From Trichosphaerium sp. ATCC 40318 (lineage: Eukaryota; Protista; Tubulinea), in NCBI GenBank assembly GCA_038496445.1, contig JALMLS010000268.1, positions 1 through 64,000 of the forward strand: a stretch of 64,000 nt of DNA. Direction: 5' to 3'. Shown piece by piece: positions 1 to 19,288 of this stretch. The notes beneath the pieces are model-generated. The model did not search any database, was not told where the DNA came from, and worked only from the letters and a program-made list of their open reading frames with translations. Each line of letters opens with the position of its first letter. Within the stretch, counting starts at the first letter, position 1. The position numbers and the translations under genes were made by a program.

Positions 1-786
1 TTCAAATGTGTGAATGTTTTTTAACGAAAAAACTACAAAAAAAGGTGTAATGGTTTTCTAGTCAAGAACTCTACAAACAATATATCCTCGTTTCAATTGG
101 GACACTAGAAGATTCATGTACCTTTAAACAATCATTAACTATTTCTAATTGACGCCTAGCAACGCTCCACAGAGATTCTGGCATGAAGAAGATAGTACTA
201 GTTTTCTTGATGAAGCAGAAGTAGCACTAGGTATTGACTCTCCGTATGATTGGTACGTTTTCTTTTGTTTTTTTCTTTTGGCCATCTTAATGGCCATAGG
301 TCTTTCTTGTCGCACTGCTAATGTTTAAGTATTCGTTTTACTTTATTTTTATAAAGCAGTGAAAATTTTATTTTTGGTGCTCTTCTAGAGTGCCAGTTTT
401 GGACGTTGTACAAGGTTTCAGCACCTAGGAAAAATTTATTTTATTACACAGGCCCTGTCACAATGCCGTTTCCATTCGCATGTTTTCTCTTTTTGACTCC
501 AACAGTCGAGTGTTTTATTTTTGTTTGAATGTAATGGTTTTTGATTTAACTACTGCCTACAGGCATTTTGTTGCCTCTAAGCATCTTGTTGATATTGGAG
601 GTGGTAGTATAATGCCAATACTACCACATGTACTTCAAAAGAGATATCCTGGCGTAGAATGGGAATTAGATAAATTTAGAAGCTCAAAAAAGGCGCAAAA
701 GTACACAACATTCTGAAAATACCGAATTTGGTTAACGATTATACGCTAGGAGTCTTGTACGACGTACAAAAACACTTGTAGGATAG
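1..786 (+). CDS. 3' part of a spliced gene of the amoebozoan-type 'YP..W...F...P..FW......F.D.....L.I....DW' repeat family; function unknown
   Basis: Manual splicing gives ...LQTIYPRFNWDTRRFINAPQRFWHEEDSTSFLDEAEVALGIDSPYDW|HFVASKHLVDIGGGSIMPILPHVLQKRYPGVEWELDKFRSSKKAQK|SLVRRTKTLVG* using GT-AG introns; the 5' end lies outside the window. Confidence 0.6.
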
Positions 787-1006
787 TAAGAAAAACAATC
801 AAAAACATTTTTTTAAAACTCGAACTTGTTCGTTTTGTGAGCCCATTTTCTTTTAAAAAAACGCTTTTATTCTCATCGTACATGATTGCTTTTGAAAATA
901 CGCGAATGTACCGTTTTGTAGAGTTCAGGTGAAAAAACACAAAAACATAATTACGCCGAGACCTTTTTTAGTTAACGCGTAGTGTACACAAAAGAACAAA
1001 GGGGCT

Positions 1007-1733
1007 ATGTGCGCTATGCTTAGTAGTAGTGCAAGTAGTGAAGGGCTGCAAGTAAAGAGAAAGAAAAAGCACTCGTATCGTAAAAGCAACGGTAGCAGTA
1101 GAAGCTTCACTCCAAAGCTTAGTAAGAAGCTTGCACGATCACAAAGCGATAATGCTTATCATTTGGATCATGAAAAACTCTCGAGAGTTGTAGACCGTAT
1201 GGATCGATTAGAAGCAGAATTAAGGAAATACAAACGAGAAATGACCATATGAAAGCTAAACTAAAGCAATATAGAAGTATCTTGTAGAGTAAAGTGGGTT
1301 AGGTTTATTATACACGACTCAGGTATACACGCGTACAGGATCATTTAAAACTTACATTCGTATTTGTACCAGCGAAAAACACAGTTTTTCATTTCCTTTT
1401 CTAGTTCACGATCTTATTACGTTATAGGGTTGTCCTGAAAGCAACAGTGGTAAACCAAGGCGTGTGATCAAGATTTTGGGGTCTGATGGTGTAGATGTAG
1501 TGACATACGAGAAACTAACGTTTAGTTCAAACCACTACGTTGTTTACTGGCGTCATTCATTCGCTGATCGCAAATACATGACCATAGGGTCTGGTGAAGA
1601 AAATATATACTTTGAATACCATACACCTGGTATGCTTGTATTCGAGATATTTCGTAAAAAGCATGACGGAGAAGACGAAAGAATGGATCCAGACAAGTTT
1701 GCTGGACCTGTCACAATTTTTGCGTATCGGTAA
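1007..1733 (+). CDS. Hypothetical protein (basic/coiled-coil N-terminus); gene model uncertain
   Basis: ORFs 1007-1252 and 1464-1733 look coding and have a GT-AG intron between them, but cannot be joined without a frameshift. Confidence 0.3.
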
Positions 1734-2096
1734 GCATTTTGCGTATCGACAGGCGTACTAGTGCAGGTACACTACAAAAAAAAATACCCCTTTGTAAGTA
1801 GTAAAAAGATGTTGCACAAGCAGTTGCACAAAACACTAAAGCGGGTTGGATTGTTTTTTAAACGTACATCAAAAAAAAACGGAATTGAGTTTTCGCTAAT
1901 TTCTTTTGCGTATTTTTTCAGTTTTAGCGGTTTCACCTAGATAAACTCAGAATTTAGAATGTAGTTTTACCCTTTGACACGTACGAATGTCAGTTATAGC
2001 ACGTGAACATTTGACATGCATTGAAAAACGTTAAATGTACTTATTTATCTCCAAGTTACTACTCAGTGTAGAATCATCTCGTTTTTGTAGTGCGTA

Positions 2097-2979
2097 ATGG
2101 TATTTTTTACAGCCAGCGATTTTGTCAAAAGAAGTACAAGTCGGGATTGCCTTAATCGCAATCTTTTCAAGTTATACAGCGTCAGTATCTCTTTCTAATG
2201 TATTACGATATCAACCGTGTATATCTCCTTGGAGAAAGGCAATTGTTGTAGTGCTATTACGTTTTTGGTGCGTTGGCGTCTAAATCCGTAGATACCACGT
2301 GATTAATGCTGCTCATAGGCAATTCTTGGCCTGCAGTTTGGTTTTGGTATTTTATCGCAAGTCAAGGAGAAGGCACGTGATATACATAGCTTTCTCGTAT
2401 TAAAGATGCTTGTAGTTTATATAGGGTTATTTGTTCTTTGTGTCTTTTACTTCTCCGCAGCTGGGTTAGGTATTGCCGCGACAAGATGGGAATCGGTGAC
2501 TCTTACAGTCTTAGTACGTTTAACGTTGTTTTTGTGTTCTAAAGAGAAGATCTTTTGCTGCTCTTTGAAGGCATAACGCTAACGCGATTTTGTTGTAGTA
2601 TATCGTTGTGTTATGTATTGGAGGCATTGGTATCTTTGCACAGTCATTGCTCGGAGTCCTTGGTATTACAGAATTAACAACCTACTGTGAACGCGGTATG
2701 CCTTTCTTTCCGATATCTAAACGTGTTACCTGACTAACGACAATTCAAGACAAAAAGTTCTTTCGCACATTGGCAATAGCATCGTTATTCTTTGTTGTGT
2801 TCTGTTGTGTACGCTCACATTTATTTTATTAATTTGGTAGTGACTTTTGTTGTATCTAGGCTGCTTGCGTAGCTACTGCAGCAAGGTATTGTTGTTTGAT
2901 TTCTAGAAAAAAGAAGTCCTTTCTATTAGCCACAGGTGTTAAAGTCGTAGAAGAGGACGTTGAGCTTGAAGATGTGTAA
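2097..2979 (+). CDS. Hypothetical multi-pass membrane protein
   Basis: Spliced hydrophobic exons (LFVLCVFYFSAAGLGIAATRWESVTLTVL; YIVVLCIGGIGIFAQSLLGVLGITELTTYCER; FFRTLAIASLFFVVFCC) ending ...VEEDVELEDV* at 2979; start approximate. Confidence 0.5.
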
Positions 2980-3713
2980 AACAAACCGATTTACCTTTGC
3001 TCAATCACGACTTTGTTTTCTTATTGTTTACTAACCAAAGGTGTACATGTTTGCACACAAAAACACAAAGGGAAAGGGTATACAATCATAGTGATAGCTG
3101 CAGTACAGATTTGTCTAAGTACATGTGTGGTAAAGCAATGTGTTGAGGGTGACAGTTAATACGTGCTGTTTGGGACACCCTTTTATTTGTACCTAAACTG
3201 TGTGCTAAAAGCGGTATGTATGTCTAATTTTATCACTGGTGTGGTTTTTATCGTTTTGCACAACAAGCTCGTTGGTGGTGGTGTCAGAGGAGGTGGTGAT
3301 GGTGGGGTTGGTTTTGTTGTTTGTTTTTTTTTCGTTCAATCAAGTGTTCCAAAAAACCACACTTGGTTGTCAGAGAGGTGGTGGGCAACCATGCTTTTTT
3401 TATTTGTTTTTTGAAACTGGTTGTAGAGCGAGCATGTGGGGGAGGGGTTCAAAAACAAAAAACAAGAAAAAAAAAAAGTACTTTAAAAACATTGCGTTGA
3501 GGTGTTTGTCTCAAAAAAAAAAGGGGTGGAATAATGACAAAAGGCAAAGGGGTGGTTGTTACACAAATGATGTACAAAAAAAATAAAAAGAAATGAAAAA
3601 ATGGAAAAATTTCAAAAGTGACGAAAACTGAAAAAAAGTTCCAAAAAGAAGCTGATTTGCGCTATACAGACGTTATAGGATGATACAAGTGAAATATGTA
3701 CAAATATATAACA

Positions 3714-3784
3714 GCGCCGGTGGTGTAGGGGTATCATATGTCCTTGCCATGGATGTGACCCGGGTTCAAATCCCGGCCGGTGCA
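3714..3784 (+). tRNA. tRNA-Gly(GCC)
   Basis: Acceptor stem GCGCCGG/CCGGTGC+A, anticodon arm ATGTCC-TTGCCAT-GGATGT, T arm CCGGG-TTCAAAT-CCCGG; T5 Pol III terminator at about 3792-3796. Confidence 0.95.
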
Positions 3785-4000
3785 ACTCAACTTTTTGCAA
3801 TTGCACATGCCACACACAACATGCTACAAATATTATTTTGCCTCTACAGTGTGCCCATGACCATAGCCTACATGCACAAACCTTTAATTTGGCGTTGCAT
3901 GATTTTGTAATGGCGTGACACTTGTGTGAAGCACTCCCCATATTTTTTACATTTTTTCAAAAAAACTCAAATTTCTGTGATTTCTGTGATTTTTCGAGCG

Positions 4001-4037
4001 GGGGTATCGCATGTCCTTGCCGTGGATGTGCTCCGGG
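4001..4037 (+). pseudogene. Partial tRNA-Gly copy (D-loop end, anticodon arm, 5' T-stem)
   Basis: GGGGTATCGCATGTCCTTGCCGTGGATGTGCTCCGGG matches tRNA 3728-3764 at 32 of 37 positions. Confidence 0.85.
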
Positions 4038-4412
4038 CACATTTTTTTTTTTTAATCGTTTTACCCCTCCCACCACCACCACCACAACAAGCACACCAAC
4101 ACCCCTCTTGCCACCTTTACACCTAAAAAAAAAAAAAAAAAAACTCCCCAAAAGGTATGTATATATTTAAATCCCATGTACTTCAAACCAGTAAACCACA
4201 ACGCGGCCGGGAAGAAAATTCTGATTTGTTTTAAAGCGGAGTAGGCAATATTGGTAACGTACGTGCGTTGCGGTTCGTTTACGGCAATTACAACATAAAA
4301 TTGTACCACACGCTCGCGTTAAATTGTGAGTCCTGAAGCGAGTAGCTGACACTTGGCTGTTCACTATTTTTTATTTATTTTGTACATTTGTGCTTACAGA
4401 AAATTTACACCG

Positions 4413-7400
4413 TCAGTCTGCTCTAGCCGCTACACCTAATTTTTCTAATCTGTCCAATATATCATTGAATGTAGGTCGGTTAGCAGGTTCTTCCTGCCAG
4501 CAATCTACAGCAAACTCAGAATCAAACATCAAGCACTACCACAGCTGTACCTTCCATCAATTTTTGATAATCTGGATTGCAGTGTTGCGGGATAGTTGGT
4601 CTAGCTCCCTGTGGCCATAGTCAAAGGCAAGGTGTGTGCTCACAATAACGTACTTGTGTACCCACCGCAAAAATCACTTGAAATGGTGGCATGCCGGAAA
4701 AAGGATCAGAACGCGAGACCATCTCCCACAATACAATAGCAAAAGAATAAACATCAGCGCTCTCAGTGTATCGGTTGTTACGCAAAATTTCAGGAGCTTA
4801 ACGAAGTAAGACAATGATTGTACAATATTCGCACCTGTCCAGCATGGTGTGCCACACGCTGTCATGGTAGTTGATTGCCTTTCGCCATAAATCCTACTAA
4901 GGCCAAAATCGCATACTTTTACTTTGTAGTTCTCATCAACAAGTAGATTGTGTCTACGCAGAAGTATTACGGTAAGAAAAACACACGCGGCTTACGTTTT
5001 AAGATCTCGGTGTATAATTACAGGGTTTGAATTGTGCAAGTAGGCCATGCCTTTAAATGTAAGTTGGATGGAGAAACCAAGTGGAATACCTCTAGCTGTG
5101 TCTATCATCATTCTCTTTATTAAATGCATTTCAAGAGAGAAAGTTTTATCGTGAATAATCCGATACAAACTACCCAAAGGCATAAACTCCATTACGATAC
5201 CTATCAGACATAAACGAGGGAAAAATTAGCTGCACGTACAAATGTCGGGTGGATCTGTACAGGCGCCAAGAAATTGTAGTATATTAGGGTGACGAAGAGA
5301 TCTAAGAAATATGGGTAAGAATACACACCGCAATAAAACGCACTTCATTATCATCGCTTCTCGAGAGAACTCACGAAAAAATTCTTCTGTCAATTTGTGC
5401 GCAGGTAACTTCTTTACAGCTACAATAGTTTTGCGCCATTCGCCTTTAAAAACTTCTCCAAAACTTCCTTTACCTATGATGAAATGTTACATTAATAAAT
5501 CAATAAACTGGTGTGCCTATTTTATGCAATAGCTTTATCTCAGTGCTGTTTATCTGTTTTACAAAATTTGCGAACTCTGGGTATCGCGGATCGCTACTGG
5601 AGGAACCTACATAACAATTAACATTAACTAGTAAGAAAGCACCATTACCTGCTGGAATAAAACTCTCTTGCTCAGCGCTGCCTTGGAATTGGGCATTGCG
5701 CTCTAAGCGCAACCTACACGCTTGCCACAACACTATTACACTGACAAACAGTATTATAGACACTAGTGTGATAAGCACAAAACGACAAGATGATCTCTGT
5801 ACCTGTGACAATAATCCACACATAAATAGTAATGCCGCCACGTTTGACTTGAAATTGTAGCGAATTCGAATACTGCTGGCCGTTGTTTGAAACATAAATC
5901 GGAATGCTTTTCTCTGTTATATTTAAGTTATCGCCCATAAAAATACAAATAATTCTCGTGCTATTCCTACATGTGTTGTGAGAGGAGAGATACAGAAAAA
6001 GCATGACGAAATTTTGGAAATGTACTAGTAAAAATCTGCGTACAATACTATTGTCTCTACTGAGTCACCATTTACGTAACAAACTGTCTCTAAAACGATG
6101 GTTTCGTTGTCTTGCGTAATATTACTTGAGAGAAAACCTGTTCCCCTAACTTTTTGTGAGCACCTAAATGCGGTCGAAAAATTAGCGATAGGTTTGCAAC
6201 GTACGTAACAGTTATACGAAGTTCTTTGTTAGGATGCCCAGATGGAGGCGATAAAGATATAATTTGTGCTTCATCTACAAGATAAGAAGGTTAGTGATAA
6301 CCTGAGCATCGATTTGTACCATAATACGCGAACTCAAAAGAGTAATTGTAGTCGAAGCTTGAACCAAAAGTGGCACTATTGGTAGGTCTGCATCACCAAT
6401 AGGGGCTTCGAACTTTGGAGTAACACAAGAAAATGTGTTCGCATTTACAAACGTTGCTATGCTTGGTTTGACTCCCGCAATGACACTAACTAAATGTAAG
6501 CACGTGCGTTTTAAGAATAGCATATGCGCACCAATAGACGTAGTCTTCAACCCACTGCTTATCAAAGAACCTCCCATGTATGTACACTATAGTACCACCT
6601 TTTTTTGGACCAGCGAGCGGCGTGGCACTTTCCAAGCAAGGCAAGGCTGTTTGAGGAAAAATTATTTTTTTGATTTCTTTGCTGACAATACGCACGTTGT
6701 AAATATGTCATATTCAACTGAACGCTGGAGATGCAGTAGTATGACAAGCATTCTTGTTGTGGGACATGAGATAGCGTCAACGTATTGTTTTCTCCCACTT
6801 TATAATCCAACCAGCCCTGTGGAGGCTGCTTGGTTGAAGAAATTACTGAAAAGGTGTTTGTGCAGCTCGCTAAGGATGTCAATAAAATGTAATTAAAATA
6901 TGGTACAAACAGTCATTAAATAGCGTCTGAGCGCAACAGCGCATGGTTTTAGAGTAAAATAATACAAAAAAAAAACGTTAGAAATTTCGTACAGCAATTA
7001 CAGCCATGTCTGTATGGTAGAGGTGGTACGCCATAGTATATAAGTCCACCGCCAAGAAGGAAAATAACAGAAGCTGGACAACGTTCTGAGCATGAAAGTG
7101 CGCCATGAACTGTCGCATTTACCTATTAAAGTAAATACAAGCTTTTCTTTGTGTCATACTTGAATTAATAGGTAACCCTGTTCCATTGGATCAATAAACG
7201 TTAATTGGCCGTCGAAATCGGGTATACACCCTGAATATGGCATCCACGTTTGATCAGACTGGCATTGGCCTCTACTACATTCTGCTTCTTTAAGAGCGAC
7301 CGGAATTGTCACTTGTCTTGTCTCTGTCTTACGGGTATCAGCACCACGTATGTTGTTTTGGGTATTACATGAAGGTAAAGTCTGCTGCGTTGAAAGTACT

Positions 7401-7432
7401 ACAATAAGCAATATCAATGCCGCTAGGCGCAT
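4413..7432 (-). CDS. Receptor-type tyrosine-kinase-like (TKL) kinase with signal peptide, IPT/TIG domain and TM helix (Dictyostelium DrkA/VSK-like)
   Basis: Signal peptide MRLAALILLIVV; TIG-like PLAGPKKGGTIVYIHG; TM segment about 5720-5840; kinase motifs GKGSFGEV, IIHRDLK, DFG, TACGTPCW, CWQEEPANRPTF; many short introns. Confidence 0.9.
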
Positions 7433-7549
7433 AGAGAATGGCGTACTGCCGCTCTGTATTCAAAAGGCTTGTTACTTAAAGTAGACAGTTTATTTAAGCT
7501 GTCGCGAAATCTTGCGATATTTATTAGGTAGGTGTCTGTCATACTTACA

Positions 7550-8381
7550 AAACCGTAAGTGCCTTCAAAGGCTTACCAAGGAAACGGGTATTGCCCGTCC
7601 AATGCCTGTTTTAAATAGCCTGGCCAACGAATTTTGCCTTTATCTTTATCACACAAATAGTTGAAGTACCGACCTTTTATCCGAAAGAAGAAGTGATGAT
7701 TGTTTTCCTTTATGAATTGCATGTTGTTCAGAGGTATCTTTTCGCCCTTTGTCCCTAGATAGATACTGAGACACTGTTAGAAGGAGATTTATGCTGTGTA
7801 CCCCACCACCTGTATGTTGACACTTCAATGTTCTTCTTGTTAACCAGCACAATTCTGGATACGAAGCGACACCCGTAAACGTACCTACCCGTCAATAGAG
7901 TACCAGCGGCAAAGGCACAGCTACAAGTGTCAGTTGCACAACGCATAACATGTTGCCTAGGGCGTACGCTAATGGAACTGTGACACGGTGGTAAGAGTTT
8001 CTATCAGTAAGCATCGCCCTGGCATACATATCCGCCGTGTTTGCTAGAAATAAAAGAGATAGACCTGCTCCGACCTGTTGCGGCGTCAAAACGATAAAAT
8101 AACGCGTTTGCATACAGTGAGTGTATTAAAGAAGGCAGATTGGTCAGTTTGAAATAAAATGACGTCTTCGACCTTGTGTTGCGTTCTCTTTATTTTTTTG
8201 AGCGTCTACACAGGATTTAGACAATTTTGAGTGTAACTTTAGTTTACTTGTCTTGTTGAGTGGTAAAAACTACAATGCGTTAATATTCGAGTCAGTATAA
8301 CTTCAAATACCTTCGTTGTAGCTTAATTCGTGATTGGCGTTGAATATTTGACACGCAGTGCGCGCTTACAAGGCCTATCAT
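7550..8381 (-). CDS. TMEM223/TMEM70-like mitochondrial inner-membrane protein; 3' end approximate
   Basis: Manual splicing gives MIGLLQRSFYHSTRQTLKK...DVILFQTDQSAFFNTLTVGAGLSLLFLANTADM...RFVSRIVLVNKKNIEVSTYRWWG: presequence-like N-terminus, two TM segments, and an R.V..I.L...V.T motif recalled from TMEM223. Confidence 0.5.
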
Positions 8382-8495
8382 ATTAGACAAGCATCGTGCG
8401 ACTACTTCAGTTGTCAATCTACACTACAAAATACGAATACAGTCGTGCTGTGTCAAAATACTGTTTTACATTTTTATTGTTAATTACTGTACATT

Positions 8496-9038
8496 TTATA
8501 GGATCGCTTCTGTTGTAGTGCGAAATACGTCACTGGCCACACAGTATTGGTTTGAATTTGTGGAATCTTGTATCAATACAAAAGTTTGGCTGAATTGATG
8601 AACACCAGCGCCATACTCTACTACTCCACTAACGGCTACCATAACCTCGCCTAATGCCAAGTAAGCATTAATTTAAAAACCAACAGCGAGCTAGCAACCT
8701 GCTCTTATGGGTTGTGCGTCTATGGACTGGACTCTATGCTTAGAAGCTGGTAATTCTTTCCACCAATTGCTAATTTCGTTTAACCCGTGTAAACTCCTTC
8801 CATTCCAAACCACTACGCGACATTAGCGTAATCTACTCTTTAGACGCACCTGAAGTAGCTTCCTTGTAGATATTTATTAATTGCTACACCAGAATTAGTC
8901 TTGTAGTCTCTTTTGTTGTTGTACCGCTCTTTTGGCTGAATCAAAGTACTTGTAAAAGTAATCCAGGACGAAAGTCTCGCCACGCCTTGCGTAGCTCGCT
9001 ATATCTTCTGGTGACAGCACTCTCCTCATTCCAAGCAT
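8496..9038 (-). CDS. NXT1: NTF2-related export protein (NXT1/p15)
   Basis: Spliced translation ...GETFVLDYFYKYFDSAKRAQLINIYKEATSVVWNGRSLHGLNEISNWWKELPASKHRVQSIDAQPI...VAVSGVVEY...FSQTFVL...VASDVFR carries the NXT signatures VWNG, LP.S.H, DAQP and SD.FR; three GT-AG introns. Confidence 0.88.
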
Positions 9039-9110
9039 TTGTAACAGATGTGCCTTATGATAGTTAAGCTACGAAGGTTTTGGGCCAAAGTTTTGGTACA
9101 ACGAACCACA

Positions 9111-9896
9111 ATGAGCACAGTATCTCCTTACGACATAAAGTATCTACTAAAAGAGGTTTGTAGTTGCTTTTTTGTTCCTTGTGCTTAGTACGCGTTACTA
9201 GGCTAAGATTCTCGGTGAATCAACTGGTGTACACATATGCTTGTTCGTGACGAGGGAAGGAAGAGTACGTATATCATAGCGCAGTGTAATTGCATTTTAA
9301 CGTTTATAAGTTGCACTCCTATGTCACAAGGAAGTTTTTACCGCTAGTACAAGATTATGCAAGTAAAGTTATGATTGCAAAACTATTAAAGTCTACCCTA
9401 CGTGGCGGCTTGGTACAAGGTACGTTACTCGTATGCAGCATAATCCGACAGCGCTTAGATGCCACTGATCAACCAATACCGGAAGACGAAGAAGCAGTTG
9501 CAGAGTTTATCAAAGATAGAACAGCTAGGCTAGCGAAATTCCAAACTTCACTACAAGCAATTAAAACGCGAGTAAGTCATTTACTCGGCATCCGGTGGTA
9601 TTTACTGTATCGTAGTTAACGCCAAGAATTAAACCAAGTCACCCAAATGGAGAAGAAGCATTATTGATTGTGGCTGCTCCAGGTGGTCAGATATTCAGGT
9701 AAGACAAATAAAGTATTTCGACGTCTTATAGTATTCCAGAGTGAGTTCTCCTGCTTTTGAACCTATGGTTGGCACACAGGAAGGTCAAAAGATGTTCCAA
9801 GCACTCCTATCAGCTCCCGATGATCACGAATACAAGCCTGCAATAACACCTAATCCAATTGAACATCTACACAAGAACTTTGATAAGCCAATTTAA
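9111..9896 (+). CDS. Protein with two tandem degenerate SRF/Mcm1-type MADS domains (189 aa)
   Basis: Exons 9111-9155, 9202-9264, 9311-9419, 9459-9571, 9616-9698 and 9740-9896 (all GT-AG) give a continuous 570-nt frame; both halves align by eye to the SRF/Mcm1 core. Confidence 0.75.
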
Positions 9897-10007
9897 ATGG
9901 TACCTTGTACAATAAACCCAAACATTTTGTGTTATAAAATGGAGCCACAGTTTACAGAAGCTGTCGTTCAGAGTGAGAATGTAAACATACTTATTGAAAC
10001 CTCACAT

Positions 10008-12243
10008 TTATTGAGATGGGATTGCACAAACATTTTCAACTTTCTCGATAAACTTGATGTTCATAGTTTCGAGTTCATCCAAAATTGGATTGTACAATTC
10101 AGGAATTGTTGGGATTTGTAATCCAGTGAGCTTGATTTTACCTTCCAAAACAAGACGGACAGTAATAGCAACAGGCAAAGAAACCTAAAAAGGCAAAACT
10201 AATAAATATTTGGAAACAACGAAAACTAAGACATACAGTTCTGCTCATTGATGAGTCACCGTTCTTAATACCAAAGTCAATCAATTTGGAGGTAATGGTC
10301 TAAATTACAATTAACACTTGTGACAGCTGGTTCAAAACGTACATGGCGCTCGTTCTTTTCTGGATAATCAGCAGTGAAGGTATGCTTCATCAACAACATG
10401 TCACGTTCACCTTTGACAAATGTTAACAAATCACTGCTATTGGAATGACTGTACCTTCAGCATATCTCATTTTATCAATCATAATGTGACACAAAGCGTC
10501 CAAAATGGTGTCAATACCAGCAGGTATCTAAAGAAAAAGTAAGATCTTTGAAAAATCGAAGGTTCAGCAATCAAAGCTCCTCACCTTTTCGTCTTCGTAC
10601 AAACCCAACCATGTCATGGCATCCTTGATGCTCTTTTCAGTTTCCTATAAATCACTAAATACAACATTCTACTAATAATACAAATAATGATACGTACAGC
10701 ATCCTTTGGTTTTACGGTACTACCAGATACAAGTTTTGTAGTAAGTTTATTGTATGTGGTACCAGACAAATCAGTCTTATCCAAAGAGAGGTACCCTTTT
10801 ATGGTTTGTTAGTTTACAAATCAACAGTATGGAATGGTCTACTCTATCTTCGAGTTTCGAATTTACCTCCAACTACTATCTCGTGGCAAGTCAAGGTGTT
10901 ACTTGAAGAGAAAACCTCAACAATACAACACACAGGCCAGAGAACTCTCGCGGAGGATACAAACAAAGATTTTCGATTACAAAGTAAAACGTCGCAAAAT
11001 CACGTGACAAAACTGTAAAACTTACCGATATCAGCGAACCTCTTCACAACAGCGCACCACCCTATTGAATAAATCAATGGAGAGAAATATAAGAAGAATA
11101 GTACCTTTGTTACGGTAAGTACCACGAATCATGGTCTTGCAGTCTTTAAGGCCGTAGATGTCTATGTATTTAGTGCTGTCGCGGTTAGGGTATACCTCGT
11201 ATTCACCCATATCACCGACGGATTCAACAGAGTAGCTATCAAACAAGTCTCCACCTCCAATAGTACATTTCTTACCATCTCTATTTCAGAATTAACATAG
11301 ATTGATTGGTGTCGTTCGTACTTGAGGAAAGTAGCAGAGTTTCGGCTCGCCAAAAGTACACCGCGAGGTGCCCAAGAAAATTTGTATCCGAAAGGGTTGT
11401 TGTTGTCTTCTGGAGCTGGGAGACCGCCGCAGTAGCTGGTAAAGCCAGTAATCTTACCGCCCTCCTTTGTCACAGAGTTGATGACGCGCATGGCACTAGA
11501 AGAGTGAGACGCGAAATAGGCGCATAAATTATAAAACGCAAAAAGATGTCAAAAACTCAGTGGGATTTTATAATCATAAGTCATTGGAAACCTGTGTTAT
11601 TCTATCATCGCATTTTAGGGAAATTTGTGGAAAATACAGCTATAATGCGAATTTTCAAGCGAATATAACGTTATACTATAGTGCGGCTATGACGAACCTC
11701 ATGTGATCGGTACCAGGGTCTACGCCACATTCGTTAAGGAGAATAATGCCAGCATCTTTAGCTTGTTGTTCGAGCTCTTTCATAGCATCTGACACGTATG
11801 AAGTGGTGAAAAAATTGATTCTAAAAGAAGTTAGTACATATTAAAGTAGGAAAAAAGTTGTGACACGCGTCTAGCAGTTTTGTAGTTTGCGAACGCCAAT
11901 AACGTAGAAACGTACTTGAATTCAATGGCGACTTTAGCGACAGCGACATGGTGGATGTATGGCAATAAGGAGACAATAGCAGAAAATTTTGTCTAGGCAG
12001 TGTTAAACGTGATAACATTGCGCAGAAAGGTACCTCAGCTAGCAATTTAGCGAGTTTTTCCAAACCGTCTTTCTCTACGTCGATTTGTACTGCTTTAGTG
12101 TTCTTAATGCCTGCGATTAGTTTTTGAGCTTTTTCTAAGCCTCTAGAACCAACATAGACGCTATAGTCATTGTCGGACATATATTGTACGATTGGCTTTG
12201 TGACATAGCCAGCACCAAGAATGAGAACGTTTCCTTTGGACAT
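10008..12243 (-). CDS. LYS9: Saccharopine dehydrogenase (NADP+, L-glutamate-forming)
   Basis: VLILGAGYV Rossmann motif, NECGVDPGTDHM, SYCGGLPAPEDNNNPFGYKFSWAPRGVLLA, YPNRDS, IRGTYR, SSMSRTVSLPVAI, LYNPILDEL. Confidence 0.95.
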
Positions 12244-12410
12244 CTTACTTCGTATTAAGAAAAAATGGTAACTGGAAGAGAAAGCGTTTGATTTATTTAT
12301 TAATTTTATTTGGAACGTTTATGACAACACGCCACTCTACGAATAGTATGTGCACTACGCTATTCTGTTAAATATCTCAGTAGTGCAGGGTGTTTTTATT
12401 GTTTTTTCGC

Positions 12411-13133
12411 ATGACAACTATACAACTCAAAAGCGGTTGCGTTATTACAAGTTACGAGCAGTTCTTAACACAAAAAGAAGCCACGGAGCTGTTTAACGTG
12501 CTAGAAAAAAAACCGAGTTGTACAATAGACTGGAGGCAAAAGAAGGTTCATGTTGGCGATCGAGAGGTGACTGAACCACGATTTACGGCTTTCTTGGGAG
12601 AACGAGATGGCTTAGACTACAAATACAGTGACACTGTAAATACATCGCAAAAGTGGCCTGCTGCGGTTGAAGAGGTGAAAGATAAGATAGAAAAGGTGAC
12701 TGACCAATGTTTTAATGTGGTGTTGCTTAATTGGTACCAAAACGGGTCTCATCACGTTGGATGGCATGCTGACGCTGAAGAGGATCTTGTAGAAGGTGCT
12801 GTTATAGCTTCCCTCTCGTTAGGTGCAACGCGTACGTTTCAGCTGCGACACCTTGATGACAGCCAAAAGGGCGCGTTAAAAACTCAAGCGCATACTAAAA
12901 GAAGGAAAGGTATTGCCTTGACGCCGCAAGAGACCGAAGTGCTGGATTACGCTCCTGGTGAAGATCCTGAAATGAATCGATCAATGCTTGTTTGTCACGG
13001 AGATTTGTTGATTATGGGTAATACTTTGCAGCGTTACTGGAGGCACCGTGTTCCTCGTGAAAAAGGTGATGTTGGTCCACGCATTTGTATGACTTTTAGG
13101 CTTGTCAAACAATCAAGTATAGATAGTAAGTAG
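12411..13133 (+). CDS. AlkB-family Fe(II)/2OG dioxygenase (ALKBH2/3-like), intronless
   Basis: FNVVLLNWY, WHAD (HxD), IASLSLGATRTF, WRHRVP, RICMTFR; first ATG at 12411. Confidence 0.92.
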   Translation: MTTIQLKSGCVITSYEQFLTQKEATELFNVLEKKPSCTIDWRQKKVHVGDREVTEPRFTAFLGERDGLDYKYSDTVNTSQKWPAAVEEVKDKIEKVTDQCFNVVLLNWYQNGSHHVGWHADAEEDLVEGAVIASLSLGATRTFQLRHLDDSQKGALKTQAHTKRRKGIALTPQETEVLDYAPGEDPEMNRSMLVCHGDLLIMGNTLQRYWRHRVPREKGDVGPRICMTFRLVKQSSIDSK

Positions 13134-13352
13134 CGTAAATAAATTATTAAAGTGTGTAAAATCAGAATTTTCTTCCCGGCCGCGTTGTGGTTTACTGGTT
13201 TGAAGTACATGGGATTTAAATATATACATACCTTTTGGGGAGTTTTTTTTTTTTTTTGTTTTGTAGGTGTAAAGGTGGCAAGAGGGGTGTTGGTGTGCTT
13301 GTTGTGGTGGTGGTGGTGGGGAGGGGTAAAACGATTAAAAAAAAAAAATGTG

Positions 13353-13389
13353 CCCGGAGCACATCCACGGCAAGGACATGCGATACCCC
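13353..13389 (-). pseudogene. Partial tRNA-Gly copy in the right arm
   Basis: Reverse complement of 4001-4037. Confidence 0.85.
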
Positions 13390-13605
13390 CGCTCGAAAAA
13401 TCACAGAAATCACAGAAATTTGAGTTTTTTTGAAAAAATGTAAAAAATATGGGGAGTGCTTCACACAAGTGTCACGCCATTACAAAATCATGCAACGCCA
13501 AATTAAAGGTTTGTGCATGTAGGCTATGGTCATGGGCACACTGTAGAGGCAAAATAATATTTGTAGCATGTTGTGTGTGGCATGTGCAATTGCAAAAAGT
13601 TGAGT

Positions 13606-13676
13606 TGCACCGGCCGGGATTTGAACCCGGGTCACATCCATGGCAAGGACATATGATACCCCTACACCACCGGCGC
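13606..13676 (-). tRNA. tRNA-Gly(GCC), second copy
   Basis: Exact reverse complement of 3714-3784. Confidence 0.95.
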
Positions 13677-14374
13677 TGTTATATATTTGTACATATTTCA
13701 CTTGTATCATCCTATAACGTCTGTATAGCGCAAATCAGCTTCTTTTTGGAACTTTTTTTCAGTTTTCGTCACTTTTGAAATTTTTCCATTTTTTCATTTC
13801 TTTTTATTTTTTTTGTACATCATTTGTGTAACAACCACCCCTTTGCCTTTTGTCATTATTCCACCCCCTTTTTTTTTTGAGACAAACACCTCAACGCAAT
13901 GTTTTTAAAGTACTTTTTTTTTTTTCTTGTTTTTTGTTTTTGAACCCCTCCCCCACATGCTCGCTCTACAACCAGTTTCAAAAAACAAATAAAAAAAGCA
14001 TGGTTGCCCACCACCTCTCTGACAACCAAGTGTGGTTTTTTGGAACACTTGATTGAACGAAAAAAAAAACAAACAACAAAACCAACCCCACCATCACCAC
14101 CTCCTCTGACACCACCACCAACGAGCTTGTTGTGCAAAACGATAAAAAAACGCCCTTGTAAAGACAAACTTTGCACAATGTTCCACACCCAAACAACACA
14201 GACAACGGCACAAGATTATGAGGAAAGCCAGCAAAAAACAACACAGTGCGCACCACACGTGGTTTGTAACACATGTCATAGTCTTGTGCCGTTAAACTAG
14301 CTGTGTTGGTTTGGTATGAGTGAGCCTTTCACCGTGACCTGTATTGACAACAATTGTAACGGCAAACCTCAACG

Positions 14375-15486
14375 ATGGCACCACACATACCACGAGTTGT
14401 AATATACGCTACGTTGATGGCGTGCGTATTTATTGGTTCCATTTCTTGCGATGGTAGGTAATATTTCCTCAGCACTAACTAATGTGCGCCGCGATAGTAT
14501 TCTACGAGAGCGATTGGGCATTAGACTTCCCTGAGGTAAATTCATCATGTAGCGCATTTGAGAATTGTTCCTCGTGTGTTAAAGCTAAGAACTGTGGATT
14601 CTGTAATGATAAGTACGCAATTGCGTTGGTAGAACAACTTTTCGAAATGTCAAATACGATTTCGCTTTCTTTGTCCTAATACGCGTTGATATTTACAAAT
14701 ATAACCATAGGTTATATTGCAACGCGCCTTGTATTAATTATTTACCAGATACGCTTTATCTAATTTATTTTAGGTTTTTATGCGTGCCAACTACTCCTGA
14801 CGGTAAACAACCATTGAACATGACGTGTGAAAGATGGATGGTAACAGAAAAAGAATGCACGGAAGGCACGTTTAGTTTAATAGTCTCGCACGCCCGCAAA
14901 ATAACTTGCAAGCGTTATACCAGTATTTAAGGGGCAGTACATATTTTTTTTTATTTCTGTCGCTTACAAATCAGTAAAGGTGTTTGTACTACCACTGCAG
15001 GATGTAAAGTATGCTCTCAAAGGCCTTATTGCGTATGGTGTGAAAAACAAAAGTTGTGCGCTTCTGGTGGTGTATTTGGACCTTACAAGAGTCATCCTAC
15101 GTGTAACGATTGGCGTTGGATGCGTTGTAGTGGATGTATGTTCGCCTAAAAGGCTTAAATACACTTCTTTTTGATATCGAGCAAAATGAGCATGATTTAA
15201 CCTTGTTTCTCTTAGTACATGGACCAGAGACACTTTACATCATTGGATCAATGCTTGCCATAGTACTCATAGCAATATGCGTAGCAATTTTCCTCATTAA
15301 ACGCCGGTATGATAATAATAAAAAATTCTTCAGAAAAAAAAAAACCAAACAAACCACTGACGTTTCTTAATTAGGAACAGACGACGTGCTATACGCACAA
15401 GAGAATTGACTATTGATGCCGACTTTAGTGCGACATTCAGTGGGACGGATGGTGGAGTACTAGCAACTACACCATTCATAAACTGA
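14375..15486 (+). CDS. Single-pass membrane protein with two PSI-like Cys-rich domains (PTTG1IP-like)
   Basis: Signal peptide; CSAFENCSSCVKAKNCGFC and CKVCSQRPYCVWCEKQKLC...DWRWMRC; TM IIGSMLAIVLIAICVAIFLI followed by KRR. Confidence 0.75.
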
Positions 15487-15786
15487 CGGCGCAGCAAATA
15501 ATTTTAATCAAAAAAAAGAAGAAACCATTTTTCACCCTGCCTCTTCTTTTTAACCGTGACACTAATGAGACTAAACCAACCAAAGATTGTGTTACACAAC
15601 ACTTGTAAATTATAGAATAAAAGTCCTTTGACAGGAAAAAAGCTCAAGCTTCAAAAGACAAAACAAGACCAGCTCCGAATGTCAGTCTTGACATTTCTCA
15701 AACTTTTGAGCATCAAAAGCGATACAAAATAAAAGGTGGAAGTGTTAGGTATCTATTAGACTTAATTTTGTCACGGGTCGAATTTC

Positions 15787-18097
15787 ATGATGATATTTCG
15801 CGTACTCACACTCTGGTGTTGCGTCACTTCATCTCTATTTGCAATATTAGCGCGTACTCGTATGGCAAAAAACAAAAAAAAACAACTTCCCTGAACTAGG
15901 TTTCTAATGCGTATATAAAGCTAGTAATCAGTGTAATTCTAATAACCAAGACGGAGAAGTAATAGAGGTCCCTTTAAGGTACGAAAATGACTATCCACGT
16001 GATACCAAAAGGCAAAAACGTGATAATAAGACCTTGTTGTTTTTTACACTTATTTTTAAAGGGCGTTGGTATACTCGCCATCCACAATAGGATTGGATCC
16101 AGGTAGCCTCAAGGGTTTTTTATGTTAAACAGTCATTTTTGTTAACTTGATATCCTTTAGACGGCAACAAAGTAGATCTTTATAGTAACTACTTTGCACC
16201 TCTTCACGAAGTGCGCTTTGGCTGTTTTGTTAAATAACTACAAAGATTGAGCGTTAACTTCTTTTCTTAGCGAGATATAGAGCTTATTGCTGCTACTGGT
16301 GCTAATGCCGTATGGGCTACTTCTAACTGGGTCCCTGGAGGTGATCATTCAAGTTTTTTAAACACGCTAAAGAAGCACAATATTAAGCTTATAACAAGCT
16401 TTGCGTTCCCAAGTTTAGCAGTGATAGAAAAAGCAGATGTTAGTTTTCATTTTATCATTTTTATCACGTGATGTGAACCTGTTTTTTAGAATGTTGTAGA
16501 AACAAAGCTAATTTGTTTTATTACAGACGAGAGATTTGGTTAGGAAACAATTTAGAAAATTGTTAAAAGAGTTTGACGCTACTGATACACCACTTGAGAT
16601 GTACACAATAGAGGCTCCTCCTGCTAAAGGATTCTCTACCGATACCTTGTGTACGAAATTACAATTATAAGCTCTTTGTTTAGTGTAAAAATGACGCGAT
16701 TCTTCAAATTTTTACTTATCAATGTAGCGTCATATTACTCTTTGGCTCAAGATATGAAAACTGAGATTATTCATGCCAAACAAGACTATCCTTTGGGACT
16801 TGGGTTACCTTATGACCAGCAACAGATGCCTGATATGAAAATAGAGCACTACGATGACGTAAGTATCGAAACTACGTCCTATTTGTGTTATTAACTTTTG
16901 CTTTGGTTTTAGTTGCAGCATGATTTTTGGACAATTAACTTTTTTCATACGAATATTACAGCTCTAGAAGATTTCTATATAAGTGATAAACCTATTATGC
17001 TTACCGTTGGAGCAGATAATTGGAATGTTCAAACCGTACGAGACTCCAAAAAAGCAGTTGAAAAATCAACTAAAAAAACTTTGATAGCAAACAACAGATG
17101 ATGAGCAACAAACAATACTACTCAAACAAATGATGGATTCTCTTTGTGATGTATTAACTTATTGGAGTGATTTACCTACTGGTCAACGGTTTCTTCATGC
17201 GTTAGCATTTCATGAAGTAATTTACTTGAAACATTATCTAATATCCAGAAAATCTTCATTCATTATTTTTTTTTAGTTCTCAGATGAATGGTGGCGTGGT
17301 AAACTTGCGACAAATGGATATGATCCTGAAGGATGTCCAAATAATGATCCGTACGTGTTTTTTTGCTTCAAGTTTATAACACAAGCACTGAAAGTACTCT
17401 TACTTTTCCTTTTACGCTCTTGTTGTTATAACATTTTATTATTAATACTGTTGTTACAGATACGCACATACGTCATGTGGGGTACTTACTGATCTTAACA
17501 ATATAAGTGCGCACAATTATACAAAAGATTTGGCCGTATTGGAGTACATGGGCTTGTTTCAGATATGGTATGTACTTTTGCTGGATTACCTAAATTTAAA
17601 GTTGTGTTTTCTTAAAGTATTTTATAGGGATGAACCGTATCACTATTGTCAACAAGCCAAGGATTCTGCATTATTTATAGCATCCCTATGGAATTGCTCT
17701 CATGATCCAGGTCGTAATTTTACACTCAGGATACACAAAGTCTGTGCAGAAGGTGAGAACTTAATTCAATGTGTTTTCTATCTATTGACGTCTTTACCCC
17801 TCTTTCGCTTATTAATGTTTCAGGTTCACTATTCTTGGGCGTATACCCCATAGCGGGTATTTTCGGTATAATCTAGTTCTATTTCCTTTTTTTCTTCCTG
17901 AGGTTGACGTTTCTTACTTTTTTCTGATAGCATCTTTTTTGGTTCTTGTGCTACTGTCTATAATGCTTCCAAACCCATGTACACGCTATTCAATATAGTT
18001 TATGTATTTATTGTTTGTTATAGGGTGTTGTACAGGTGGACATGACTATTCATTACTGCCTCAAGTACTTAATCAAAATCAAGACGCTGTTAATTGA
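15787..18097 (+). CDS. Membrane-anchored GH-A clan (GH2-like) TIM-barrel protein, possibly inactive
   Basis: Spliced segments ALVYSPSTIG, RDIELIAATGANAV...DHSSFLN, KPIMLTVGADNWN, FHEFSDEWWRG, EYMGLF; signal peptide and C-terminal TM. Confidence 0.6.
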
Positions 18098-19288
18098 TGC
18101 GTTTTGTTTTCTACTTCTCAAAAAAAAAAAAAATGTACAGCAAAGAAAAACAAAAATTGTTACACTTACGAGTTTGTTTTCTTGTTTTTACCTTTTTTTA
18201 TAAAGCGCACATATAAATATTGTACGCCATTATCTTTTGCCTGGAAAGTGACGGAGAATCAAATTGGCAAGCAAGAAATACGATGTTTTTATTGCTGTGT
18301 GTCTCTGTCTATTGGTCGGATTTTCTCTGATCTGTTGACACGCTATACATTACGGTTGTAATTATATATTCCGTTAGTTTCGGGAGCATGTGAGTTTCAC
18401 GTTTTTCATTTATGATTTTGAGAAGAAAATCAGTTCCTGTCGCGCAAATAGTTTAGACACATAACCTTAACAATCCTAGTAAACCATATATATCAGCAAT
18501 AAGGTATTGAGTTATTTATTTTAAGAAAAGGTGTAGCTAATTCTCAATAAGCCCTTCAAGTTACCCATTGACGTACCAAAACAGTGTAGTTAAGTAGATT
18601 GAACAGCTGTATTAATAGCGAGTTGAAAAGGCTATATTGTGACGTTTCATAAGATTTTGTAAAATATCCTTTGTTGGAAAAATTGGCACGTTTGCCACGT
18701 GTGCGCAACAGTCAACACTTCTCAAACAAACATTGCGATGTCAGATACTGCACTACGGTGTTTAGTTGCTTCGTTTGGCACTGCTGTAAGAAGAAATCAT
18801 ACAGGCACCTATGGTTGCCACTATCAACGCTGTGGTATCACAAAATAGCTCAAGAAGGTAAGCGCCTACTATTACCACGGCTTTTACTAACTCACTGGTT
18901 TTGAGAAAACCAAGAAACTGTTTAGATCATCTGTACAGTACTATTGCAAGCTAGCCACCACGCCATTAAAACGTACGCGCGCTCACAAACCATTAATCGT
19001 TCAACGAGGTCGTCACAAAGTCGGCCTCCAAAAAGTCACCAGTGCCTTACTAGCAAAATGAAAGCGTTTACTACTTGTTTATTGTTTATTCGTATCAACC
19101 ATGGTTTCATGCGTATTAACTTCCAAGTTAGCATACTTCATTCCTAATTTTGGTAATCTCTTGCTTAGAAGCAAGCCAGTTAACTTCTCTGGAAAAACAA
19201 AGGATCAAGTTCGTAACATCAGAGGATTTCGTGCAGCCGGAAGTCAAAAGAATTCAGATTATCAGGTACTAATTATTAATAGAACAAT

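Follow-up and report, generated by a model that had tools for sequence, protein, structure and literature searches.

A tRNA-Gly cassette pair in inverted orientation around an 8.9-kb gene block of Trichosphaerium, most likely marking the breakpoints of a young inversion

The gene block and its inverted-repeat arms

The window analyzed here is a stretch of 64,000 nucleotides from Trichosphaerium sp. ATCC 40318, in whose first part a block of ordinary cellular genes lies between the two arms of an inverted repeat, each carrying a tRNA-Gly gene. A GC content of 38% and genes with introns mark the locus as nuclear. Its features are the following, the domain assignments of the block genes resting on individual exon ORFs that were each searched alone.

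1-3244, no strand: outer flank A, starting at the contig end C27:1; a second copy, reversed relative to the block, at C36:11291-14540
3245-4227, plus: inverted-repeat arm on the left, 983 bp, with 3245 as its outer and 4227 as its inner end
3591-3594, no strand: site of a pogo-like DNA transposon of ~1.98 kb in the arm on contig C36; both window arms are empty
3714-3784, plus: tRNA-Gly(GCC) of the left arm (ARAGORN and Rfam, 54.6 bits)
4001-4053, plus: degenerate tRNA-Gly fragment with a T12 run, left arm; fragment proper 4001-4037
4228-13158, no strand: single-copy gene block, 8.9 kb, ordinary cellular genes
4621-5192, minus: protein kinase exons (Pfam PK_Tyr_Ser-Thr), the 3' end of the gene toward the left arm
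8496-8660, minus: NTF2-domain exon, NXT1-like
11162-12243, minus: saccharopine dehydrogenase exons, LYS9-like
12411-13133, plus: AlkB-type 2OG-Fe(II) oxygenase, its stop 25 bp ahead of the right arm
13159-14148, minus: inverted-repeat arm on the right, 990 bp, with 13159 as its inner and 14148 as its outer end
13353-13389, minus: degenerate tRNA-Gly fragment, right arm
13606-13676, minus: tRNA-Gly(GCC) of the right arm (ARAGORN and Rfam, 54.6 bits)
14149-20000, no strand: outer flank C, present once in the assembly

The initial annotation had described near-identical inverted repeats of ~1 kb with tRNA-Gly genes, and the repeat search, MAFFT, ARAGORN and Rfam all bear this out. Of the six genes that it placed in the block, the kinase, NXT1-like, LYS9-like and AlkB genes were likewise recovered as domains on single exon ORFs, the TMEM223-like and tandem-MADS genes being putative, and the ORF end at 13133 confirms the short gap it reported between the AlkB stop and the right arm.

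The arms were compared by a repeat search of the window and a MAFFT alignment that included 100-bp flanks. They are mutual reverse complements whose identity breaks off abruptly at both ends. Their differences comprise four 1-base changes in homopolymer length (in T, A, G and C runs), one 3-base indel heading an A-run and one A/C difference within that same A-run; outside homopolymer runs the alignment contains zero substitutions between the two ~985-bp arms. A near-perfect inverted repeat of 985 bp cannot be due to chance.

The two tRNA-Gly(GCC) genes are identical and convergent and lie 9.8 kb apart. A T5 run at 3792-3796 is the likely Pol III terminator of the left gene. The fragment downstream has 86% identity to tRNA-Gly positions 15-51, lacks the acceptor stem and the B box, and by its sequence looks like the remnant of an older tandem tRNA copy. 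Within the arms, the ncRNA search (Rfam) returned nothing besides the tRNA, and the Pfam search of ORFs gave no domain match and no transposase; around each arm and around the whole unit, no direct repeat was found that could be a target-site duplication. The initial annotation's remark that neither transposase nor target-site duplication is visible thus agrees with both the flank alignment and the Pfam search.

A second copy of the locus with the block flipped

The genome-wide copy-number search that had been proposed with the initial annotation yielded three copies of the 1-kb unit in the 70-Mb assembly, namely the two window arms and one on contig C36. Other tRNA-Gly(GCC) genes of the assembly share with the unit the ~75-87-nt gene alone and have none of the arm flanks, a pattern that does not fit a tRNA-derived SINE or another mobile tRNA unit. 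With all three copies at this locus or on C36, the duplicated arm sequence is neither a dispersed repeat nor a transposon.

On C36 the locus is arranged differently. Window positions 4848-13799 match C36 1-8931 on the plus strand with 98.9% identity; the block part of this match (4848-13158) covers C36:1-8300 and the match continues into the arm. Beyond an insertion of 1,977 bp, window positions 3594-1 match C36 10908-14540 on the minus strand with 94% identity. One arm on C36 therefore joins flank A, at the outer end of the arm, to the end of the block, and the block is flipped relative to the window. The junctions of flank A with the outer arm end and of the inner arm end with the block end occur both in the window and on C36, while those of the inner arm end with the block start and of the outer arm end with flank C occur in the window only.

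Several features bear on how the two contigs are related. The block start (4228-4847) is unique in the assembly, and it is single-copy together with flank C and the DNA beyond flank A on C36; since the outer neighbors are single-copy, the topology is that of a heterozygous bubble. Divergence between the two contigs is patchy, with 0-3% substitutions and locally 10%, and the end of each lies on or close to the outermost variant that tells them apart, as haplotigs would. Another contig, C389, is a haplotig of C104 with 96-97% identity, so the assembly does retain haplotigs. From this we infer that C27 and C36 are alleles.

An intact pogo-like transposon sits in the C36 arm alone, ~120 bp upstream of the tRNA, which makes that arm distinct DNA and not a product of re-used reads. 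At seven or more substitutions and many indels the window arms agree against the C36 arm, and these differences reach within ~40 bp of the outer end and ~100 bp of the inner end. The two window arms are thus sisters relative to the C36 arm. A single C36-type arm is present in the assembly. The contig itself runs out at window position 4848, and the far junction, where the block would meet either a second arm or flank C, lies a further 620 bp on; the presumed one-arm state of the C36 haplotype would show there.

How the inverted repeat may have arisen

The repeat most likely marks both breakpoints of a young inversion of ~9-10 kb that is polymorphic between two haplotypes. That a real inversion polymorphism bounded by the repeat exists is, in our judgment, probable; that inversion and repeat arose together in one step from staggered breaks is plausible, though we place it a little short of probable. 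The C36 haplotype would have preserved the ancestral order, namely flank A, a single cassette, the block running from end to start, and flank C. Breaks flanking the cassette, staggered by ~985 nt, and one further break between block start and flank C would have been followed by fill-in and by rejoining with the middle piece reversed. Such a break-and-fill-in mechanism would give flank A, cassette, block from start to end, inverted cassette and flank C, and this product order is exactly the arrangement of the window. Under the model the two junctions common to both contigs would be old and the two restricted to the window new. A duplication that postdates the split of the haplotypes should be heterozygous. 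With no gene disrupted, the haplotype would have gained another tRNA-Gly(GCC) gene, probably functional, and an arm pair open to later gene conversion or re-inversion. Arm-to-arm conversion occurs at a tRNA-Lys locus of the same genome, so identical arms need not be young, an observation that speaks against a one-step origin.

The same Lys locus is pertinent to the reverse order of events, in which the inverted repeat predates the haplotype split, both haplotypes have two arms that gene conversion keeps identical within each, and a crossover inverted the block in one of them. The tRNA-Lys pair shares derived variants within a haplotype in mid-arm, so that conversion between arms does operate, and at the Gly locus the arms are long and practically identical and both block orientations are present in the assembly. 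Precedents exist in a yeast flip/flop region (PMC9731477) and in the tRNA-flanked yeast inversions described in a passage of PMC3302566. Yet conversion at the Lys locus is merely partial, whereas here the window arms would have had to be homogenized from edge to edge, leaving the C36 arm with its 2-13% divergence. The assembly lacks a second C36-type arm, whose diverged outer third should not collapse onto C27; in addition, two steps (duplication, then inversion) are demanded where one is enough. We therefore consider this order of events unlikely. The initial annotation had proposed an invertible block with arms kept alike by gene conversion. The two orientations relative to flank A on C27 and C36 and the conversion at the Lys pair agree with that proposal; the inversion may, on the other hand, have produced the repeat instead of resulting from it, and a chimera of amplification or assembly could account for the flipped copy.

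A chimeric C36 end would mean that the repeat is real and the locus has one fixed orientation, the flip being an artefact of MDA-amplified DNA. A displaced 3' end in one arm would snap back on the other arm and copy outward, producing molecules that run from the block in plus orientation through an arm into flank A in minus orientation, and the assembler would have retained these as a contig-end spur. The published Trichosphaerium sp. draft, made from MDA-amplified nuclei and assembled with Canu, Pilon and Redundans (PMC10521059), is the probable source assembly. MDA chimeras are mostly inverted, with >85% both inverted and intramolecular (PMC1855051), what is flipped on C36 is its terminal 8.3 kb, and in the same assembly low-GC mitochondrial DNA forms a perfect palindrome without spacer, contig C318, that is likely a foldback artefact. 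Against this, the C36 tail has clustered haplotype-specific SNPs, as true allelic DNA does, and the switch would have to lie within the 637 bp that separate the inner arm end from the pogo insertion. Chimeric molecules should moreover be outnumbered by true reads, and the C36 haplotype would need two arms, which the sisterhood of the window arms relative to the C36 arm disfavors; the MDA origin itself depends on a source assembly whose identity is probable. On this evidence an artefactual flip is improbable. As a general warning, any true inverted repeat can yield false flipped isomers in assemblies from MDA-amplified DNA.

The repeat itself was also considered as an artefact and rejected. A foldback chimera leads from flank and unit into their own reverse complements (A-U-U'-A') and does not yield a 1-kb inverted insert after which the original strand resumes, and two exact false junctions in the contig interior would be required. 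The junction of block end and arm recurs on C36, on another haplotype background, and the block end shares no microhomology with the sequence past 4227 that might yield a recurrent chimera. Sibling tRNA pairs with 2-5% diverged arms indicate that the class is biological. The mis-assembled arm that the initial annotation feared is for these reasons unlikely.

Could C27:1-14148 and C36:1-14540 instead be paralogues, products of a segmental duplication of ~14 kb with the flip as a fixed difference between them? Both copies do sit at contig ends, where assemblers break at long repeats, but here flank A is broken where it diverges most (2-10%), and long reads easily cross that part. The outer neighbors are both single-copy and bubble-like, the extra flanks that a paralogue requires are on no contig, and the assembly holds other haplotigs; we regard paralogy as very unlikely. 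A mobile element is scarcely credible, whether one takes the 1-kb unit alone or regards all 10.9 kb as a composite transposon ending in 1-kb terminal inverted repeats, since solely the long terminal inverted repeats speak for it, whereas copy number (three, all at the locus or its presumed allele), the missing target-site duplication, the missing transposase or any other Pfam domain in the arms, a cargo of housekeeping genes and the arms of other tRNA pairs, unrelated outside the tRNA, lead to its rejection. The mobile or amplifying tRNA unit of the initial annotation was therefore not borne out, the unit being confined to the locus and the C36 copy and devoid of transposase, terminal structure and target-site duplication.

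Paired tRNA genes and comparison with known inversions

Besides this locus the nuclear genome holds at least three same-anticodon tRNA pairs; those examined are a Gly pair on contig C30, an Asn pair on C12 and the Lys locus. Apart from the tRNA itself, their arms are unrelated to the tRNA-Gly arms. All four nuclear pairs tested, this locus included, are convergent; as 63 of 3,648 tRNA candidates were scored with Rfam, pair frequency and orientation bias are rough. The symmetric staggered-break model leaves the convergence of all four unexplained. A flank-only search found no haplotig of the C30 Gly pair. Clusters of tRNA genes on C291, C318 and C369, which resemble giant versions of the locus, were set aside as mitochondrial (bacterial-type SSU rRNA, GC 29-31%).

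One conceivable view, which we hold to be distinctly unlikely, is that the amoeba's tRNA genes act as fragile sites with a polarity, and that breaks there repeatedly yield convergent inverted duplications and micro-inversions, for example through Pol III-replication collisions or a tRNA-directed nuclease. If true, this would be a lineage-wide mechanism that multiplies tRNA genes and reshuffles neighboring gene order, with the present locus as its youngest, still heterozygous example. If the flipped copy is real, a single assembly captures the two alleles of a very young inversion along with its duplicated breakpoint, and the question of whether the inversion made the repeat or the repeat made the inversion, usually debated from old and decayed cases, could be decided directly. 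Small inversions associated with tRNA genes would then be known from Amoebozoa as well as from yeasts.

Pairing of this kind is known from Dictyostelium, where same-anticodon tRNA genes likewise form close, near-identical pairs; the likeness considered here is in the pairing. Amoebozoan pairs are defined by an identical anticodon, near-identical sequence and a distance below 20 kb, and the window tRNA-Gly genes are such a pair. The paired tDNA insulator that the initial annotation raised as a possibility would call for TFIIIC/TFIIIB occupancy and barrier activity. Large inverted repeats of plastids and some mitochondria similarly bracket a single-copy segment with an RNA-gene-bearing repeat, but these are organellar, multi-copy and continuously isomerizing, whereas the amoeba locus is nuclear.

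Among yeasts, the flip/flop region of S. cerevisiae chromosome XIV is a gene block bounded by a homogenized kb-scale inverted repeat and known in both orientations (PMC9731477), as is the block described here. The yeast repeat, however, is ancient and consists of 4 kb of sporulation genes, and re-inversion has occurred in many strains, in contrast to one observation per orientation and a tRNA cassette in the amoeba. Inversions of 1-30 kb in Saccharomyces sensu stricto, all tRNA-flanked according to the passage of PMC3302566 that cites Kellis et al. (2003), are similarly small with tRNA genes at their ends. In yeast the homology amounts to roughly the tRNA gene or nearby Ty/delta elements, whereas the amoeba duplicates 985 bp, of which ~900 bp are unique flank.

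The closest parallel comes from Drosophila, where Ranz et al. (2007, PMC1885836) found inverted duplications of ancestrally unique breakpoint sequence in 17 of 29 inversions, often from one breakpoint only and ranging from 46 bp to ~1.9 kb, a range that the 985-bp arms fit. In both systems the flipped segment is bounded by inverted copies of a unique sequence, which the other arrangement carries once in Drosophila and presumably once in the amoeba, the duplication derives from one breakpoint, and the breakpoints are without a transposon. Differences lie in the duplicate itself, in the amoeba a tRNA cassette and not a protein gene, and in the setting, as the amoeba locus was read in one assembly from presumed haplotypes, its arms show zero divergence, and the single-copy state at the far breakpoint would fall outside the contigs. 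Taken together, the locus is most likely an inversion of this known kind, with a duplicated breakpoint, and not a mobile element.

The inverted arms and the genes between them

A repeat search and an alignment that took in 100 bp of flank around each arm confirm the initial annotation in its description of near-identical inverted arms of about 1 kb, each with a tRNA-Gly gene: the sequence at 13159-14148 is the reverse complement of that at 3245-4227. The left arm measures 983 bp and the right arm 990 bp. Apart from four homopolymer runs whose lengths differ by one base, a 3-base indel heading an A-run and one A/C difference within that run, they are identical. Similarity is lost abruptly past both ends of the arms, and no target-site duplication was found in the same alignment. 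Searches of the arms against Rfam and Pfam returned no Rfam family besides tRNA and no Pfam domain. We are highly confident that the repeat itself is real, since it could be an artefact only if two precise but false joins lay inside the contig, one of them recurring on C36, a second contig of the assembly.

The two tRNA-Gly(GCC) genes are convergent, each with a T5 run 8 nt downstream, and each arm also carries a truncated fragment with 86% identity to tRNA-Gly positions 15-51, followed by T12.

3714-3784, + strand: tRNA-Gly(GCC), left arm
4001-4037: degenerate tRNA-Gly fragment, left arm, about 215 bp further downstream of the tRNA gene, with the T12 run reaching 4053
13353-13389: degenerate tRNA-Gly fragment, right arm
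13606-13676, - strand: tRNA-Gly(GCC), right arm

The fragment looks like what is left of an earlier tandem duplication of the tRNA gene, comparable to the intact tandem on contig C30. The enclosed 8.9 kb consists of ordinary genes with introns. Searches of exon ORFs bore out four of the proposed genes, namely the kinase, the NTF2/NXT1-like protein, saccharopine dehydrogenase and the AlkB-type oxygenase, as identities resting on single exon ORFs rather than spliced models. The 3' ends of the kinase and AlkB genes both face the arms.

A flipped copy of the block

BLAST of window positions 1-20000 against C36:1-30000 revealed a second copy of the region in a different arrangement.

C36 1-8931: window 4848-13799, same strand, 98.9%
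C36 ~8932-10907: 1,977-bp insertion directly after this match, a pogo/Tigger-like DNA transposon of ~1.98 kb (ORF 466-2292 within C36:8501-12400, segment L016)
C36 10908-14540: window 3594-1, opposite strand, 94%

With A for the outer flank (1-3244), U for the tRNA cassette, B for the block (4228-13158) and C for the right flank (from 14149), C36 read backwards runs beyond - A - U(with insertion) - B(end..4848). The outer end of its single arm lies on flank A, like that of the window's left arm, and the inner end on the block end, like that of the right arm. This arm joins A to the block end, so that, compared with the window, the block is flipped with respect to A. The insertion, about 120 bp upstream of the C36-arm tRNA, is an intact element with a 608-aa ORF containing HTH_Tnp_Tc5 and DDE_1 and with terminal inverted repeats of about 46 bp. 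At least eight full-length copies at 99% identity occur on other contigs, so the element is probably still active. With a transposon of its own in the arm, C36 is distinct DNA.

The window makes up the first 64 kb of contig C27, and several observations bear on how C27 relates to C36. Three stretches occur only once in the assembly: flank C (14149-20000), the block start (4228-4847) and the DNA that lies past A on C36. A heterozygous bubble with collapsed flanks has this topology. Divergence between C27 and C36 is patchy: it is 0% over stretches of kilobases, other parts of the block differ by 1-3%, and A differs by up to 10%. C27 starts where variants are dense, C36 starts 115 bp beyond the last indels that tell the two apart, and the assembly retains another haplotig, C389 (27 kb), a 96-97% copy of part of contig C104. 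On these grounds we take C27 and C36 to be separate haplotypes; that they are paralogues on the same chromosome is possible, less likely than allelism and, in our estimation, quite improbable.

In a three-way alignment the inner 637 bp contain no fewer than seven substitutions, and the outer 350 bp many indels, at which the window arms agree against the C36 arm, an agreement that stops only about 40 and 100 bp short of the ends. These shared differences make the window arms sisters: they are either younger than the haplotype split or were fully homogenised after it.

Other tRNA pairs in the assembly

A partial survey, combining a partial Rfam scan with inspection of fetched loci, covered four pairs including the window. 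It yielded three further nuclear convergent same-anticodon pairs with arms longer than the gene.

C104, segment L038, 4506-5516: Lys(TTT) pair, arms 311 bp, 95.6% identity, spacer 390 bp
C389:14001-24000, segment L039, 2025-7908: haplotig copy of the Lys(TTT) pair
C12: Asn(GTT) pair, arms 155 bp, 97.4% identity, spacer 2.2 kb
C30: Gly(GCC) pair, arms 1,127 and 519 bp, 99.4% identity, spacer 2.5 kb

Arms from different loci are unrelated apart from the tRNA. The pairs reflect a recurrent process rather than an element family. None of the four nuclear same-anticodon pairs checked in this partial survey (C27, C30, C104/C389 and C12) is divergent, a convergent bias that a symmetric break model leaves unexplained. 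The four Lys arms of C104 and C389 form a mosaic: their centres share derived variants within each haplotype, including an 8-bp deletion, and their edges retain orthologous signal. This pattern indicates that the inverted tRNA arms have undergone partial gene conversion.

Some of these loci have further features. In C389, a 4.9-kb insertion missing from C104 (L039 2338-7203) lies 56 bp downstream of the left tRNA-Lys; it has terminal inverted repeats of about 118 bp (89%) and ORFs without Pfam matches, and is possibly a tRNA-associated transposon. The C30 pair has an additional tandem tRNA-Gly copy in its left arm, and its spacer holds a repeat of about 1,030 bp (L044, C30:79601-89600, 4587-5617) with at least 40 copies genome-wide at 96-98% identity. 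On C81:222701-232700 (L045, 4257-5808) two tRNA-Trp(CCA) genes lie in direct orientation 1.4 kb apart, in 143-bp units of 93.7% identity, so tRNA duplication here is not solely inverted. Same-anticodon tRNA pairs have also been reported in Dictyostelium (PMC8163159).

Three small contigs, C291 (L041/L042), C318 (L043) and C369 (L046), have a GC content of 29-31%, a bacterial-type SSU rRNA and a tRNA Cys/Trp/Met/Asp cluster; they are mitochondrial DNA. The arms on C291 span at least 7.7 kb and flank a 3.8-kb spacer; C318 is a perfect palindrome without spacer across at least 10 kb, either a foldback artefact or an unusual form of mitochondrial DNA.

Possible origins of the flipped arrangement

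The account that we tentatively favour, with confidence somewhat short of even, is the staggered-break model (Ranz et al. 2007, PMC1885836), here as a one-step inversion, which accounts for everything seen. The ancestor would be the C36 haplotype, carrying a single cassette in the order A - U - B(end..start) - C. Breaks flanking U on each side with a 985-nt stagger, plus one break at B-start|C, fill-in of the staggered ends and reversed rejoining of the middle piece would give A - U - B(start..end) - U(inverted) - C. The junctions A|U-outer and U-inner|B-end would be old, and both contigs show both; U-inner|B-start and U-outer|C would be new, and are seen in the window only. The model predicts duplication at one breakpoint, zero arm divergence and heterozygosity.

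Classically, recombination between pre-existing arms would have flipped the block. This stays viable because the tRNA-Lys pair shows true arm-to-arm gene conversion, but it would take two steps and homogenisation of the arms over their full length, and it calls for a second C36-type arm, of which the assembly contains none, and we consider it doubtful.

Equally doubtful is that the repeat is real and fixed and that the C36 flip arose as an artefact, by snap-back between the arms during MDA. The assembly studied here may be the published draft of Trichosphaerium sp. Am-I-7 (70.87 Mb, 710 scaffolds, 37.69% GC), which was built with Canu, Pilon and Redundans from Nanopore and PacBio reads of MDA-amplified nuclei (PMC10521059), and most chimeras that MDA produces are inverted and intramolecular (PMC1855051). 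A true inverted repeat lends itself perfectly to snap-back priming, the expected product block(+) - arm - A(-) matches the C36 end, and the mitochondrial C318 is a perfect spacer-less palindrome in the same assembly. However, the C36 haplotype must then have two arms, and the artefact could not form if the repeat is young and heterozygous.

The proposal of a mobile unit is refuted, and we give it almost no credence: the eukaryotic assembly searched (70.3 Mb, 642 contigs) holds only three copies of the 1-kb unit, the two window arms and the interrupted one on C36, there is no target-site duplication around the arms, and the remaining tRNA-Gly(GCC) matches (three on C30, a 76% match on C44) have only the 75-87-nt gene in common, so the unit is not a dispersed or mobile family.

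The proposed invertible block is partly supported: the flipped orientation is present on C36, but it is likelier that the inversion left the repeat behind as a scar than that the repeat caused it. Comparable duplications accompany 17 of 29 Drosophila inversions, range from 46 bp to about 1.9 kb and often affect one breakpoint only (PMC1885836). In yeast, recombination between inverted repeats has a precedent in the chromosome XIV flip/flop (PMC9731477), and inversions flanked by tRNA genes are described by Kellis 2003, as cited in PMC3302566. The locus studied here is a further case of two known kinds, the inversion-associated inverted duplication and the tRNA-flanked micro-inversion.
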